Shown here one piece after another: positions 36,663 through 42,559 of a DNA stretch of 47,988 nucleotides (within the stretch, counting starts at the first letter, position 1; every line of letters begins with the position of its first letter). This DNA comes from Salisapilia sapeloensis CBS 127946 (taxonomy: Eukaryota; Protista; Oomycota). The translations under genes were made by a program, and so were the position numbers. The stretch lies in NCBI GenBank assembly GCA_023334545.1, contig JAADVB010000144.1, positions 1-47,988 on the forward strand, given 5' to 3'. The notes beneath the pieces are model-generated. The model ran no database searches. It saw only the letters and a program-made list of their open reading frames with translations, and was not told the DNA's origin.

Positions 36663-38141
36663 ATGTCGAGTGTCGAGCCGCATGGACGGCGGTTGGAGTG
36701 TTTCCGACCGCTCGAACGATATCATATGAACTCGGAGCCACTCGATGTTGATGCTCCGTTAGCGTGTGACTGCCACCCGGAACAAGTATTCGAATGCGTG
36801 TTCGCGCCTGCTCAAGATCCATCTGCGTCTGACCTCGTGCTTCTCCATGACAATTACGTCCAACGTCTAGTTAAATGGGGCGAAAAGTATAAGACGAAAG
36901 ACTGGTCTTCACCTCGTGTGTGTCAGAAATGGCGAGAAAATCAATTGAAGTTCCATTTGGAGACCGAGACGAGTGCGACCACGAGTGACGAAGACGATGA
37001 CGTCGATGTGCCGTGGGGCGCGCCACCATTATCGAATAACGTGAAACTAGCGTTTAATAACTTTGCCAGTGCTGCTGAAGCACTCTATACGAGTCGTCAA
37101 TTCGATGCTTTGCTACGTTCCGGCGTCCCACCGCCGCTACGAGGACAAGTATGGTACATGTGCAGCGGTGGCCAGTCGAAACGGGAGACGAGCCCGACGT
37201 CGTATTGTGAGTACTTGACTCAAGAGGTGGCAGATGTGACTCTCCAGGAGATTGAGAAAGATCTACCGCGGACGTTTCCACATCATGACTCGAAGCACGA
37301 GCTACGTCGTCGGAATCTTGAAGAGCTACGACGTATCCTCCAGGCCTACAGCGTTCGGAATCCATCCATCGGGTACTGCCAGAGCATGAATTTTCTCGCT
37401 GCTGTCCTCTTGCATCACATGCGTGAGGAAGAAGCATTCTGGGTCCTCTGCTGTGTCGTGGAAGACCTTCTCCCAGGTTTCCACACACGTAGCATGGCCG
37501 GGAGTCGAGCGGAGCAACGTGTCTTTGCTCAGCTCGTCCGCCAAAAGCTACCGACGTTGTACGCCCACTTGCAACACTTGCATGTGGACGTCGAACCGTT
37601 TACGCTCAAGTGGTTTCTTTGTCTTTTTCTCAATACGCTTCCGTTTGAACCTGTCTTGCGTCTCTGGGATGTCTTCTTCTGTGAAGGCAGCCACGTCCTC
37701 CTGCGCATGGGTCTCGTGCTCTTGAAACTACGAGAGCCATGGATCCTCGCGTGTGAAGAGAGCGTCGATGTGTATGAACTCTTGCGCTTTCCACACGCTG
37801 CGCTCTTGGAGATGACAAAGCCGTATCGAGCGAGGATCTTGTCTAAGGACGAGTGTGTGTGTGATACGCTGCTACGTCTAGCCATGGACCGTACATTCGT
37901 TGGTGGCATCGCATTCGATTGTCTGCATGAACTCCGGAGCTTTCATCGTTTGGCGATTGAAGCGGAGTTTGCAGAAGAGGAAGAAGCGAGGAAGATGAAG
38001 GACGGGTCGGATACTGAATATGACTTTGTCGATGAGTATGAGGGTGATATGTCTCCATCGAAAGTCATTCGTTTCCAAGAAATGTCCGGCCAAGATGACT
38101 ACTTTGTCAACGTCCGATGCGATCGACTGGAGTACATGTAA
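36663..38141 (+). CDS. TBC-domain Rab GTPase-activating protein
   Basis: GVPPPLRGQVW, IEKDLPRT (Arg finger), GYCQSMNFLAA (Gln finger), EEEAFW and WFLCLF..LP...LRLWD. Confidence 0.93.
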   Translation: MSSVEPHGRRLECFRPLERYHMNSEPLDVDAPLACDCHPEQVFECVFAPAQDPSASDLVLLHDNYVQRLVKWGEKYKTKDWSSPRVCQKWRENQLKFHLETETSATTSDEDDDVDVPWGAPPLSNNVKLAFNNFASAAEALYTSRQFDALLRSGVPPPLRGQVWYMCSGGQSKRETSPTSYCEYLTQEVADVTLQEIEKDLPRTFPHHDSKHELRRRNLEELRRILQAYSVRNPSIGYCQSMNFLAAVLLHHMREEEAFWVLCCVVEDLLPGFHTRSMAGSRAEQRVFAQLVRQKLPTLYAHLQHLHVDVEPFTLKWFLCLFLNTLPFEPVLRLWDVFFCEGSHVLLRMGLVLLKLREPWILACEESVDVYELLRFPHAALLEMTKPYRARILSKDECVCDTLLRLAMDRTFVGGIAFDCLHELRSFHRLAIEAEFAEEEEARKMKDGSDTEYDFVDEYEGDMSPSKVIRFQEMSGQDDYFVNVRCDRLEYM

Positions 38142-38164
38142 AACGGATAATAGCAAGCACGAAT

Positions 38165-39244
38165 TTATTTCATTTCTACACTCGAATGGAGTGCCCCGAA
38201 TAAAAAGTCGATCGCCGTGTCGTACACGTGCGTCGGTCGAGACGTATAATGTTCACCTTGTACCTTTTGGATCATACTCGGACCTTTGTACTTATTCGCG
38301 AGCTGTTCGCTATGATGCCCATGGACGTATTTGTCGTCATGACCGGTGAGGAAGAGAGCAGGGAGGAGACAGAACGGAACTAATTCGATCGGACGGATGC
38401 GATCGAGGTCGACGTCCGTACGTTTCTTGACACTCTTCTCGACGAAGATGGTGGCAGCTCGAAAGACTGCGGATGGAACGTCGAAACCTTCTTTCTTGAT
38501 GCTACTCATAAGCTCCTGCACGAGCTTAGTCATGGTCGCGTAGCCGCCATCTAGTACCATCCCTTTAATAGGTTTCTCGATCGATAGAAGCTCGGGACGA
38601 CGAAAGGAGGCAGGAAGACTCTGCAGCTTTTTACGCTGCTTGGCGTCACGTGTGGTGGCAACGACGTTGGCAATGGCTGGGTACGTTCCCATGCTATGTG
38701 CATAGAAGCAGAAGGACTTCACGCTCGGGTCTTTGTCTAGATGCTCTAGTACCGAGTGCAAGTCCGTCGCTTCGTTCCATCCCATGGTCACGAAGAGCCC
38801 ATCGGACTGTCCGGAACCGGAGAAATCAAAGGCAAAAACGGACATGCCTCTGTCGAGAGCTTGGTCTCGAACACGCAAGGCATCGACACGGCTGCCGAGG
38901 TTCGAGTGCAAGTAGACGAGGCATGGAGCTGCCGTGGGCGATGTCGCCGAGGTATCGAATAATTGCCAATAGGAGCACTCGATTTTCAAGTCGCGTTCAT
39001 TGAGCAGGGTCAAGTCTTTCCGACGTGCCTCTTGGCCGTTGTCAAGACCGATGGTCGTGTCACCCAAGTCGGCGACGTCATAGACGCATCGCGGCGGTCG
39101 AATGACCGATGAAATCATGTCGTTGTATGTATCTGCGACATACTTTTGGATACTATCATCACCAGCAGCTCCTTTCTTCTTGAGCTCTTGCTCGAGCTCA
39201 CCTTCTTCAAATATCTCGATTTGCGAGGAACCTCCACTACCCAT
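38165..39244 (-). CDS. Alpha/beta hydrolase, probably N-myristoylated
   Basis: N-terminus MGSGGSS; VYLHSNLGSR, FDFSGSG.SDG, nucleophile elbow AHSMG, Asp in GHDDKYV and His in GEH. Confidence 0.85.
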   Translation of the reverse strand: MGSGGSSQIEIFEEGELEQELKKKGAAGDDSIQKYVADTYNDMISSVIRPPRCVYDVADLGDTTIGLDNGQEARRKDLTLLNERDLKIECSYWQLFDTSATSPTAAPCLVYLHSNLGSRVDALRVRDQALDRGMSVFAFDFSGSGQSDGLFVTMGWNEATDLHSVLEHLDKDPSVKSFCFYAHSMGTYPAIANVVATTRDAKQRKKLQSLPASFRRPELLSIEKPIKGMVLDGGYATMTKLVQELMSSIKKEGFDVPSAVFRAATIFVEKSVKKRTDVDLDRIRPIELVPFCLLPALFLTGHDDKYVHGHHSEQLANKYKGPSMIQKVQGEHYTSRPTHVYDTAIDFLFGALHSSVEMK

Positions 39245-39394
39245 CTCTACTTGTCTTCACGTTCTGCTGGAAGGGATGATGATGACGACGATGCTTCTCG
39301 AATTTTGACCAATCTAACATTCTAAAATTACTTTATAGCCAATGAAATATCTGATATAAATATCACACTTGAATTAGTCATTTCATACTTGAAT

Positions 39395-40082
39395 ATGCTA
39401 TTTGGAGGTACTCGTCGACTATTCCACTCGACGCGACGTGCTGCGTTCATTTTACGCAACCCAGGCGATGCGTCTGTTGCGACAGTGGAAAATGCGGCGG
39501 CGGAAAACATGACAAGTCGGTACGTTTGCAACATAAAAGATGGTTTTGTATGTATGAAGTGGAATCGAATGATCATGCGGATGTAGTCGAGTCATTAGCC
39601 GCAGTGATGGCATGGGCTTCTCGATGCAGCAGGAAATCTTCCGCAAGGATACCCCCGTCCGACTAGACTTTCGCAATCACGTCTACGCATTGACCGTGAC
39701 GCAAGGTCATGGCGAAGTGCGATTGCTCGAGACGCGTGGTGGTGCCGGAGGGAAGGCGCAGGATATCCGAGAAGGATCGACCATTGCACTCAGTGCTTCC
39801 ACTGTCATTGAAGTCATTGCCAAGTCGGACGAGCTGCACGCTGTCAGGTAGATTTGTTTGCGCATACAAGATACGAAGGTGGGCTAAGATTTTTTATGCA
39901 GCGTCATGAACCCTCCTCTTGTCGGCAGCGAAGAGCTAAATGAAGATGGAGTATTCCCAGCAGCTGATGAAGACGGCACGGAACTAAGCAGTTACGACCG
40001 TAGTGCATTGCGTCGATTGATGGACCCTCCAGAGTCGCTGAAAGCAGGCACTCAGCCCATGAAAGATCATCCATTTTTCTAG
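39395..40082 (+). CDS. ectC-like: Ectoine synthase (EctC)-like cupin with mitochondrial-type presequence and substituted iron ligands; exons 39395-39519, 39587-39847, 39902-40082 (188 aa)
   Basis: Two GT..AG introns (39520-39586, 39848-39901) give an open frame: MLFGGTRRLFHSTRRAA-FILRN...TSRRVISRSDGMGFS...DFRNHVYAL..GHGEV...IREGSTIAL...SVMNPPLVGSEELNEDGVFP. This aligns collinearly with remembered EctC IVR...SRRL...DGMGFS...YKNHLEAVY..GEGE...PGT.YAL...CVFNPPLTG.E...EDG.YP. Confidence 0.85.
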
Positions 40083-40498
40083 TCCAGTAGCGTAGACATA
40101 GACATCTTTATGGCAAACGCTCGATTCCAAGTCATACCAAGTGATCTCTACTTTTATGTTCTCTCTTTCTCATACCAAGGTCGGACATCGTCCTATTGGC
40201 AAACTCGCTCTTCAAAGTCGGAGAGTACGTTCTGAATTTCCATGTGCGTTCGTGAAAGGTAGAAGGAAGGATAGAAAGCCATGTTGTTTCACAGACGACT
40301 ACTCAATCTGGATCCACTCGACTCTTATTAGCCTGTCTACATACCATTCTCTGCCATGTAGAACGAGGACTGTCGTGTACAGTTACAACTTGTGATTTCC
40401 TTCCGCGGCTGTATACTACTGGCCATTCTCCTACTTGATTCCAACCTCCAATATCACTTGCGGTCCGTCTCCACCCTGCCATAGCTGGTTTACAAACG

Positions 40499-42559
40499 AT
40501 GGGGAAAAAGACAAAGAGGTTACCACGGGATCGCACATCTACAGCCGCGACACTCTCCGCGTCAACCTGTTCGCCTTCACCGGAAGCATCCAACGACATT
40601 GTGATGCTCGAAGGAGATTCACAACATAGCCCGATCGGACAGTCAGATTTATCCCACAAGATCGATATGTCGATAGAAAATCTCAACTCCGAGCTGGCGG
40701 AAAGCGTGGCAGCGTCTGCCACAACTGACGTGCGATACTATCGACAGTATCCTCACTTTCACGATGTGGATGAGATGAATGCGAGATTACCAGCACCCAT
40801 GAACCGGTGTTCACTCACGTGGTCCAACGTCAGCTACGCACTACAAGCACCTCGTAAAATCTGTCGGAACGTGCCACGAAGAGGCAAGAGTGAGCAGTAT
40901 ATCTTGCGTGATGTATCCGGTCGATCAGCTCCAGGAGAACTAACAGCTATCTTGGGGTCATCTGGAGCTGGAAAGACAACGTTATTGGACATCTTAGCCG
41001 ATCGAGTTCGTAGCAGCAAGTATACCCGAGTGGATGGAAGCATTGAGCTCAACGGACAGCCACGACAGGCAAAGACGTTTCGATCCATGGTGAGCTACGT
41101 ACCACAGGACATGGCATTCATGGGTTCTTTTACCGTACTCGAGACACTTCAGATGGCAGCTGGACTTAGTCTACCTAGCTACGTGCCTCAGATGACACGA
41201 GAGATGCGTGTGCAGGACGTTATCGATGACATGGGACTGCGTAGTTGCGCCCGAACGAAAGTTGGCGATGTCTTTTGCAAAGGTATCTCCACTGGCCAAC
41301 GAAAGCGGTTGGGCATCGCAGTCGAATTATTATCAAATCCTTCTATCCTACTGCTGGATGAGCCCACGTCTGGACTGGATGCTTCCTCTGCATGCAACGT
41401 CATGCATCATTTGGTTCAACTCGTCAAAAGTGGGAAGAACATTGTTTGCACACTACACCAACCGTCTTCTAAGATCTACATGATGCTTTCGAATATTGCG
41501 ATTATGAGTGCTGGTAGACTCGTTTACTTTGGTCCTACTTCCTCTGCTTTGCAGCATTTTGAGCAGCTAAGGTACCCGTGTCCGATGTACTCAAATCCAG
41601 CCGAGCACTTCCTACAGCTCGTGAATAAAGACTTTCACGACGATCTTGATATCGTGCCGTTTGTCGCTGCATGGGTCGACAGTCATGAAGCACACTCATT
41701 ATCTCAAAGCATTGCTGCCGATAAACAACAGTATTGTGGCATCGAACAGGACGTTGTCCATACGCTATCACCTTCTGCAGTGCATCAATTCACAGTGTTT
41801 CTGCATCGTAACTGGGCTAACAATTGGCGCAATCCAGGTGTCTTCTGGATCCGAGTCTTTATGTACGTCATGCTGACGTTTATGGTTGGAACCATGTACC
41901 TTTCAACCAACAATCACATCACGAGCAACGCGATGGTATCTCTACTCTTTTACGTCCAGGCGTTCCTCGTGTTCATGTCAGTTGCAGTACTTCCTGCTAT
42001 CATTGAACAGCGAGCTGTGCTTGATCGAGAGATGCTTAACAACTCGATCAACGTGTTCAGCTACACTATCGCCAATCTCGTAGGTGGCTTACCTGGACTG
42101 ATTGTCATCTCGCTACTTGCAACGACTATCGTGGTCTACCTCGCAGGCGTGTACTCGTTTGGTTCCTTCTTCTTCAATCTACTGCTCTCATTAATCGTAG
42201 CAGAGAGCTTAATGCACGTCATTGGCGCTGCGGTGCCTCATTATATCATCGGCATCGCTGTTGGCGCCGGCGTCTTTGGTATGTTTATGCTGTGTGAAGG
42301 CTTCATGGTGCCTTATAGCTACATCCCTTCCTACTGGATCTGGGGGTACTACTTGGCTTTTCACACGTACTCGTTTCAATCCTTCATGTTCGAGCATTTC
42401 TCTACTATCAATACACCAGAGTCGTGGCAAGTGTTGAAAGAGTATGACATGGAAAACGTAAACGTTGGTAAGAATATGCTGGTGCTTATTGTATATGCGC
42501 TAGTACTACAACTGGTGTTTGGCTTCATCCTCCAGTATTCCAGTCACCGTCGGAAGTAG
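40499..42559 (+). CDS. ABCG (White-type) half transporter, NBD-TMD
   Basis: Walker A GSSGAGKT, signature ISTGQRKR, Walker B LLLDEPTSGLD, H-loop LHQP, and a multi-helix C-terminal TMD. Confidence 0.95.
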   Translation: MGKKTKRLPRDRTSTAATLSASTCSPSPEASNDIVMLEGDSQHSPIGQSDLSHKIDMSIENLNSELAESVAASATTDVRYYRQYPHFHDVDEMNARLPAPMNRCSLTWSNVSYALQAPRKICRNVPRRGKSEQYILRDVSGRSAPGELTAILGSSGAGKTTLLDILADRVRSSKYTRVDGSIELNGQPRQAKTFRSMVSYVPQDMAFMGSFTVLETLQMAAGLSLPSYVPQMTREMRVQDVIDDMGLRSCARTKVGDVFCKGISTGQRKRLGIAVELLSNPSILLLDEPTSGLDASSACNVMHHLVQLVKSGKNIVCTLHQPSSKIYMMLSNIAIMSAGRLVYFGPTSSALQHFEQLRYPCPMYSNPAEHFLQLVNKDFHDDLDIVPFVAAWVDSHEAHSLSQSIAADKQQYCGIEQDVVHTLSPSAVHQFTVFLHRNWANNWRNPGVFWIRVFMYVMLTFMVGTMYLSTNNHITSNAMVSLLFYVQAFLVFMSVAVLPAIIEQRAVLDREMLNNSINVFSYTIANLVGGLPGLIVISLLATTIVVYLAGVYSFGSFFFNLLLSLIVAESLMHVIGAAVPHYIIGIAVGAGVFGMFMLCEGFMVPYSYIPSYWIWGYYLAFHTYSFQSFMFEHFSTINTPESWQVLKEYDMENVNVGKNMLVLIVYALVLQLVFGFILQYSSHRRK

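Follow-up and report, generated by a model that had tools for sequence, protein, structure and literature searches.

An expressed EctC-family gene of Salisapilia sapeloensis that lacks the iron ligands of ectoine synthase

A gene of the ectoine synthase (EctC) family is located at positions 39395-40082 on the forward strand of contig JAADVB010000144.1 from the oomycete Salisapilia sapeloensis CBS 127946 (GenBank assembly GCA_023334545.1). Positions 1 to 47,988 of this contig were analyzed and are referred to here as the window. Three exons, 39395-39519, 39587-39847 and 39902-40082, join to form a coding sequence of 567 nt that consists of 188 codons and a stop codon. On balance, we favor the view that this is a transcribed two-intron nuclear gene from a single-copy oomycete family derived from EctC, and that its product would act as a mitochondrial, metal-free binding protein or pseudoenzyme. 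The segments of the gene are as follows.

39395-39519, + strand: exon 1, codons 1-41 plus 2 nt of the codon for Arg42
39520-39586, + strand: intron 1, 67 nt, GT..AG, phase 2, skipped in contigs of 4 RNA runs
39587-39847, + strand: exon 2, 86 aa, core of the cupin barrel, aligned to residues 26-71 of EctC from Paenibacillus lautus (PlEctC)
39848-39901, + strand: intron 2, 54 nt, GT..AG, phase 2, skipped in contigs of 4 RNA runs
39902-40082, + strand: exon 3, lid segment (SVMNPP...GVFP), C-terminal extension and stop codon

The gene is represented in the list of open reading frames by three separate pieces at 39389-39586 (65 aa), 39612-39851 (79 aa) and 39906-40082 (58 aa). The first-pass annotation, made from the letters of the window, had noticed the first two of these as unrelated pieces and had proposed three exons with canonical GT..AG joints and a product of 188 residues. 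That gene model is confirmed by transcripts. The joints 39519/39587 and 39847/39902 are exactly present in the contigs assembled from four public RNA runs, and both proposed pairs of splice sites are therefore in use. Three of the runs share one source organism and match the window at 100% identity; the fourth, labeled as a different organism, is ~96% identical.

The ends of the transcript were located from the same contigs.

39378-39384, + strand: INR-like initiator TCATTTC, probable transcription start; RNA contig X1 begins at 39378 and X5 at 39388
40083-40124, + strand: short 3' untranslated region, with the main transcript end at ~40104-40124

The sequence GTCATTTC is found at 39377-39384, and its core TCATTTC is an exact match to YCAYTYY, the definition of the oomycete INR (PMC3599244). 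The INR-like start that had been suggested near 39377 is consistent with the beginning of contig X1 at 39378. No FPR element (MWTTTNC) was found by eye downstream of the INR. Position 39395 is the first AUG of X1, the longest RNA contig, with no earlier ATG in 39378-39395. At the 3' end, X5 stops at 40104 and is followed by adapter sequence, X2 stops at 40124, and X1 extends farther. X1 runs past the EctC-like gene through 40400 plus ~67 nt, near the start codon of an ABCG gene at 40499, and low-depth RNA contigs are found over 40146-40400. X1 and the low-depth contigs suggest alternative 3' ends or an overlap with the 5' untranslated region of the ABCG gene.

For the family and structure searches, the exons were queried separately, and the ortholog P0052 from Pythium oligandrum (55% identical) was used as a full-length proxy. 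Exon 2 alone scores 33 bits (E = 8e-8) against the Pfam hidden Markov model PF06339, Ectoine_synth, for which the gathering cutoff is 27, and exon 3 is a collinear continuation at profile positions 106-126. P0052 scores 68 bits against the same profile. The motifs SRR, DGMGFS, NH, G.GE and NPPL.G.E...EDG.FP each align with EctC, as had been proposed. When solved structures were searched with exon 2, the ectoine synthases 5ONM and 5BXX were obtained, with no other meaningful match. A match of exon 2 to Pfam FHBP_N (E = 0.055) was taken as chance.

An AlphaFold2 model of P0052 was built from an alignment of 42 sequences. The mean pLDDT is 81.7, with values >90 along the barrel, a disordered stretch of 25 residues at the N terminus and low confidence over the last 30 residues, which contain three short helices. 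A Foldseek search of the PDB with this model returned the EctC structures 5BXX, 5BY5 and 5ONM at ranks 1-8, with generic cupins below them. The E values range from 1.5e-9 to 3e-8, the template modeling scores by target from 0.67 to 0.78, and the root-mean-square deviations from 1.5 to 2.5 A over ~105 residues at 27-30% identity. A search of the ESM Atlas gave generic cupin and EctC clusters only. The protein belongs to the EctC cupin family; profile and structure comparisons both bear out the homology claimed by the first-pass annotation and do not place the protein in another cupin family.

An exhaustive HMMER scan of 1.84 billion representatives with exon 2 gave 15 matches, the best of which are oomycete proteins of 150-200 aa. 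The matches P0006, P0011, P0012 and P0015 are repetitive proteins with summed weak repeats (two were inspected) and were set aside as chance. Word-indexed searches with the oomycete proteins revealed a single ortholog in each genome, from many species of Phytophthora and from Plasmopara, Bremia, Peronospora, Hyaloperonospora, Peronosclerospora, Nothophytophthora, Pythium, Globisporangium, Saprolegnia, Achlya and Thraustotheca. The full-length identity of the window protein is 46-55% to the sequences of Pythium, Globisporangium, Phytophthora and the downy mildews, and 37-39% to those of Saprolegniales. In P. fragariae, annotated EctC-like fragments of 64-77 aa (P0010, P0047-P0050) with degenerate motifs (QNNVYA) are present beyond the full-length ortholog and are probably a decayed second copy.

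Automatic annotation has given the name "L-ectoine synthase" to nearly all of the orthologs, from >30 oomycete genomes. Albugo, Saprolegnia, Phytophthora and Plasmopara were listed by Harding et al. 2016 among the eukaryotes with "either EctA or EctC" (PMC4987115), and this passing mention was all that a literature search for functional studies of oomycete EctC-like proteins returned. The terms "hidden" and "undescribed" used in the first-pass annotation are thus not upheld; the gene family is already known, and the gene in the window is one more member. The window protein was absent from the protein collection, as were the proteins of both neighboring genes in an exact look-up, and the gene seems to be unannotated in the Salisapilia genome. 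What seems to be new is that the whole oomycete family is a selected derivative of a stramenopile-type mitochondrial EctC with a dead metal site.

The Fe(II) ligands of EctC are Glu57, Tyr84 and His92 in P. lautus, the latter two corresponding to Tyr85 and His93 in S. alaskensis (PMC6344544). The substrate is contacted by Trp21, Arg25, Asn38, Thr40, Tyr52 and Glu57, and ectoine by Ser23, Asn38, Tyr52, Glu57 and Phe106 (PMC6344544). These positions were read from HMMER alignments to 5ONM and compared, column by column, in 27 sequences, 11 bacterial, archaeal and protist EctCs and 16 oomycete-type proteins. The residues found are listed below.

39684-39686, + strand: codon of Tyr75, at the position of iron ligand Glu57; Glu in 11/11 reference EctCs, and Tyr, Cys, Phe or Gln in oomycete-type sequences
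39783-39785, + strand: codon of Ile108, at the position of iron ligand Tyr84 (P. lautus) or Tyr85 (S. alaskensis); Tyr in 11/11 references, and Val, Phe or Ile in oomycete-type sequences
39807-39809, + strand: codon of Ile116, at the position of iron ligand His92 (P. lautus) or His93 (S. alaskensis); His in 11/11 references, and Ile, Val, Met or Phe in oomycete-type sequences, with His only in the basal P0009
Position of Thr40: Thr in references, Glu58 in the window, Glu or Asp in oomycete-type sequences
Position of Tyr52: Tyr in references, Phe70 in the window, Phe, Tyr, Leu or Met in oomycete-type sequences
Positions of Cys105 and Phe107: Cys and Phe in references, Ser129 and Met131 in the window, Ser and Met, Leu, Ile, Thr or Phe in oomycete-type sequences
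Position of His/Asn38: His, Asn or Thr in references, Gln56 in the window, invariant Gln in oomycete-type sequences

Glu57 and Tyr84/85 are replaced in 16/16 oomycete-type sequences and His92/93 in 15/16; the position of Trp21 is occupied by Ala or Met. Ser41 and Arg43, which correspond to Ser23 and Arg25, are the only substrate or product contacts tested that are kept in the window protein. All oomycete sequences retain Arg25, the DG.GFS loop, Asn54-His55 and the NPP lid, and most retain Ser23 (Thr or Val in the others). Against the NCBIfam ectoine synthase profile NF009806, which has a cutoff of 128 bits, the oomycete orthologs score 71-90, the Cafeteria-type protein 143 and the bacterial enzyme 191; exon 2 alone scores 35 bits.

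The origin of the family was examined with protist sequences. A search seeded with the presequence-bearing metagenomic fragment P0014 led to the EctC of Cafeteria roenbergensis (MMETSP, P0078, 190 aa) and to similar protist sequences. A MAFFT alignment reveals three features common to the protist and oomycete proteins that are lacking in bacterial and archaeal EctC. The first is an N-terminal extension before the position of the bacterial Met1. The second is an insertion of 6-7 residues in the hairpin loop after cupin motif I (EPGQKEGEGK in Cafeteria, ETRGGAGGK in the window). The third is a C-terminal extension (GVYPAVDDEGKQYHSY...L..PPASLQEGS in Cafeteria, GVFPAADEDGTELSSY...L.DPPESLKAGT in the window).

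A maximum-likelihood tree was calculated from alignment columns occupied in at least 50% of the 47 rows, which excludes the three shared features and includes a small bacterial sample. The oomycete sequences are monophyletic (100/100), with a long stem branch of 1.05 changes per site, and their clade is nested in a eukaryotic group with four protist EctCs (97/91), of which Cafeteria is nearest (91/73). The window sequence groups with Pythium and Phytophthora, not with Saprolegniales. P0009, a Logan contig of 974 nt encoding 178 aa, is sister to all oomycete sequences; it carries Gln57 and Phe85 but retains His93 and Phe107, and this intermediate state may reflect the sequence of the ligand losses. 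A further EctC from the European Nucleotide Archive, P0081/P0088, bears a presequence, has intact catalytic residues and lies outside the stramenopile-type clade, which hints at a second, independent eukaryotic acquisition. Bacterial tandem fusions of two complete EctC domains (P0058-P0066, 273-282 aa) were also encountered, on contigs that reach 4 Mb. The iron ligands are intact in both halves, each of which contains a WYKHHWEA-type motif, and the fusions form their own clade (100/99).

The introns agree with an old eukaryotic history of the gene. Pythium oligandrum has both, at codons and phases that match those of the window. Of the two, only intron 2 is present in Saprolegnia diclina and only intron 1 in Phytophthora sojae, each with its position and phase conserved. 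Both introns date to the oomycete ancestor. The positions are shared across oomycete orders, and the gene is therefore not a capture from bacteria by an oomycete lineage. The first-pass annotation had regarded it as a bacterial gene domesticated in an oomycete lineage. It is indeed old and fully eukaryotic with real introns, but the domestication predates the oomycetes, because the tree and the three eukaryote-only features tie the family to a Cafeteria-like EctC. The sequence relationships identify the oomycete gene as a descendant of an already domesticated, stramenopile-type EctC.

A working mitochondrial ectoine synthase, supplied with substrate by unlinked genes, a host or food, would agree with the Pfam score above the cutoff, the EctC structures as best fold match, the nesting among protist EctCs that retain every catalytic residue, and the conservation of Arg25, Ser23 and the NPP lid. 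A solitary EctC from Pseudomonas syringae has been reported to function with substrate supplied by the plant (PMC5924519). Ectoine synthesis by the oomycete protein is nonetheless highly improbable, because the protein has none of the three iron ligands and only a minority of the substrate contacts. The ligands have given way to hydrophobic or nonequivalent residues, and a single Ala replacement of a ligand leaves 5-15% of the activity, a loss of 85-95% (PMC6344544); Thr40, Tyr52 and Phe106 are replaced as well. The orthologs fall below the NCBIfam cutoff and sit on a long stem branch, and bacterial orphan EctCs mostly conserve the residues that bind iron, substrate and ectoine (PMC6344544), whereas the oomycete clade does not. 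No genes of the ect pathway were found among the neighbors or large open reading frames of the 48-kb window, and bona fide EctB was reported from three protists only, none of them oomycetes (PMC4987115). We consider it very likely that the protein is not an ectoine synthase, and the database label "L-ectoine synthase" is probably wrong for the oomycete family. An ectoine-related role in synthesis, hydrolysis or sensing had been suggested for the gene; the replaced residues and the solitary position speak against synthesis, and binding or sensing is still compatible with them.

The gene is clearly under purifying selection. The window and the 96%-identical transcript differ at 20 listed positions, 14 synonymous and 6 nonsynonymous, which corresponds to a ratio of nonsynonymous to synonymous substitution rates (dN/dS) of ~0.13 (binomial p = 2e-5), and none of the 6 nonsynonymous changes falls at a family-invariant residue. 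An alignment of 10 diverse family members contains 41 invariant columns, including most of the C-terminal tail ...SLKGGSAPMKDDPLF. The reading frame is intact in all sampled oomycete orders, in >30 species from Saprolegniales to Peronosporales. The terminal part of the protein is encoded by the following segment.

39960-40079, + strand: eukaryote-specific C-terminal extension, residues 149-188, with the conserved tail ...SLKAGTQPMKDHPFF

This extension is lacking in bacterial EctC and is partly shared with the EctC of Cafeteria, and the tail is nearly invariant in oomycetes. A decaying relic, or expressed pseudogene, of a lost ectoine pathway would explain the lost catalytic residues, the apparent loss of the pathway partners and the long stem branch. 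It is scarcely credible, because the frame is intact, many columns are invariant, including those of a tail foreign to bacterial EctC, and dN/dS is ~0.13; the introns are in addition conserved and correctly spliced.

The N-terminal residues of the protein are encoded by the segment below.

39395-39445, + strand: putative mitochondrial presequence MLFGGTRRLFHSTRRAA, codons 1-17, with 4 Arg, 0 Asp/Glu and a high helical hydrophobic moment of 0.80

The end of this amphipathic leader coincides with the column of the bacterial Met1 (AFILRNPGD aligned with MIVRNLED). An N-terminal extension of 8-33 aa with 3-7 Arg/Lys and no Asp/Glu is present in 21/21 eukaryotic homologs, so the Arg-rich, acid-free character noticed by the first-pass annotation is conserved among them. 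A motif R-x-(L/F)-H-(A/S/T)-(S/T), which resembles a matrix-peptidase site, appears in most of the oomycete leaders, and the Ect proteins of Halocafeteria have been predicted to be mitochondrial (PMC4987115). From its leader, the protein is probably mitochondrial, with predicted cleavage near residue 16-17.

The following scheme would account for these data. Heterotrophic stramenopiles such as Cafeteria have an EctC that bears a presequence and is presumably mitochondrial, and the oomycete family descends from it. Along the stem of the oomycetes, Glu57, Tyr84 and His92 were replaced together with Trp21, His/Asn38, Thr40, Tyr52 and Phe106, and Gln56, Glu58, the NHV(Y/Q)A motif, SDELH.VSV.NPP and the tail ...PMKD(D/H)P(L/F)F then became fixed. 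The 17-residue Arg-rich leader would direct import into mitochondria and be cleaved near Ala16/Ala17, leaving a mature protein in which iron binding and the cyclization of N-gamma-acetyl-diaminobutyrate are both lost. A carboxylate-bearing ligand may be held inside the barrel by the retained Ser41 and Arg43 together with the new Gln56 and Glu58, and the flexible, conserved C-terminal tail may contact a partner. As a history of the family, we suggest tentatively that ectoine synthesis was lost in the oomycete ancestor and that the mitochondrial EctC was kept and made into a ligand-binding or regulatory pseudoenzyme, with a new pocket (Gln56/Glu58 and Arg43) and a C-terminal docking tail, in all oomycete orders.

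The same pocket could belong to a neofunctionalized, metal-independent enzyme that acts on another mitochondrial metabolite, such as an amino-acid derivative, with Gln56, Glu58 and Tyr75 as catalytic residues. The new residue set at the old active-site positions is strongly conserved, the carboxylate-binding Arg is retained, the gene is under purifying selection, and a new substrate has been raised as a possibility for orphan EctCs (PMC6344544, PMC5924519). Position 57, however, varies among Tyr, Cys, Phe and Gln, which is unusual for a catalytic residue, although this is a mild argument. No candidate substrate or pathway neighbor was found, and the conserved alpha/beta-hydrolase gene beside the EctC-like gene reflects local synteny and is absent in Saprolegnia. 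Such an enzyme is unlikely. That the protein binds or regulates without a metal, and has not gained a new catalytic activity, is quite possible, if short of probable.

Several points weigh against a mitochondrial, metal-free binding protein. The canonical ligands could be gone without metal binding and catalysis having ceased altogether; the choice of metal ligands is promiscuous among cupins (PMC6344544), and Tyr75, His73 and Glu58 could in principle form another metal site. The retained Arg43 and Ser41 and the lid motif would also be expected in an active enzyme with a related substrate. The presequence is short (17 aa), and the only grounds for it are its composition and conservation. The absence of ectA and ectB refers to the 48-kb window and to one paper (PMC4987115), and the predicted structure is that of the Pythium ortholog at 55% identity.

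The genes around the EctC-like gene encode a RabGAP-TBC protein, an alpha/beta hydrolase and an ABCG half-transporter; the remaining large open reading frames of the window are unrelated. The two features directly upstream are given below.

38165-39244, - strand: alpha/beta hydrolase, 359 aa, Pfam Hydrolase_4 at 33 bits, a divergently oriented, conserved neighbor
39288-39377, no strand: untranscribed gap of ~90 bp with zero RNA depth in all runs, shared divergent promoter region

On the two sides of the gap, the contigs of the divergent hydrolase transcript, which begins here, reach 39286-39289, and those of the EctC-like transcript start at 39378-39421. In Pythium oligandrum the hydrolase ortholog (52% identity) and the EctC-like gene are arranged head-to-head, and in P. 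sojae the two lie near each other. The order RabGAP-TBC(+), hydrolase(-), EctC-like(+) at 36663-40082 of the window recurs unchanged in Pythium oligandrum (L001 2621-6730), is found in a rearranged form in P. sojae and is missing from Saprolegnia diclina. A functional link to the hydrolase was set aside, and the arrangement is regarded as ordinary microsynteny. At 726-1373 of the window, an open reading frame with the N-terminal domain of an aspartate/ornithine carbamoyltransferase (149 bits) stops shortly after entering the second domain, and this gene probably continues beyond an intron.

The label "L-ectoine synthase" is attached to dozens of oomycete genomes, including those of major crop and animal pathogens. 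If the label is wrong, as is probable, metabolic reconstructions that take ectoine synthesis from this family are misled. The family is also a clean natural case in which to ask about the role of solitary EctC-type proteins: its origin from a pathway enzyme is dated, its metal site is lost completely, and it was strongly conserved from then on. The real function of a protein that is universal in oomycetes and probably mitochondrial is thus of interest. The result is a modest refinement of a catalogued family and not the discovery of a new system.

Among the closest known relatives of the window gene are the orthologs entered in databases as "L-ectoine synthase", for example P. sojae PHYSODRAFT_258801, that of Plasmopara halstedii, Pythium oligandrum Poli38472_010564 and Saprolegnia diclina SDRG_09148. 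With these it shares 37-55% full-length identity, intron positions, the residue replacements and, in part, the gene neighborhood. The window copy differs in three extra residues ahead of Ser41 and in a C-terminal PFF in place of PLF; otherwise there is no substantial difference.

Bacterial EctC (EC 4.2.1.108; 5ONM from Paenibacillus lautus, 5BXX/5BY5 from Sphingopyxis alaskensis) has the same Pfam domain, cupin barrel and C-terminal NPP lid. Relative to it, the oomycete protein has no iron triad and has most contacts replaced, and it has gained introns, a presequence, an insertion in the loop and a C-terminal extension of 40 residues. Solitary EctC-type proteins of bacteria, such as that of Pseudomonas syringae B728a (Czech et al. 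2018, 2019), resemble the window protein in having no ectA or ectB alongside and in raising the question of a relic, a new substrate or a side activity. Such bacterial orphans are reported to keep the binding residues for the most part (PMC6344544), whereas the oomycete clade does not and, with the small bacterial sample used, groups with the protist pathway enzyme.

The EctCs of Cafeteria (P0078) and Halocafeteria seosinensis share with the oomycete protein an Arg-rich presequence, the loop insertion, spliceosomal introns, a sister or nested position in the tree and a C-terminal extension of the form GV(Y/F)P.(V/A)D..G....(Y/F)......L...P.SL..G. The Halocafeteria gene sits in an ectA-ectB-ask cluster (PMC4987115), whereas the window gene is solitary. 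In contrast to the oomycete proteins, which have none of them, the protist proteins retain Trp21, His38, Thr40, Tyr52, Glu57, Tyr85, His93, Cys105 and Phe107.

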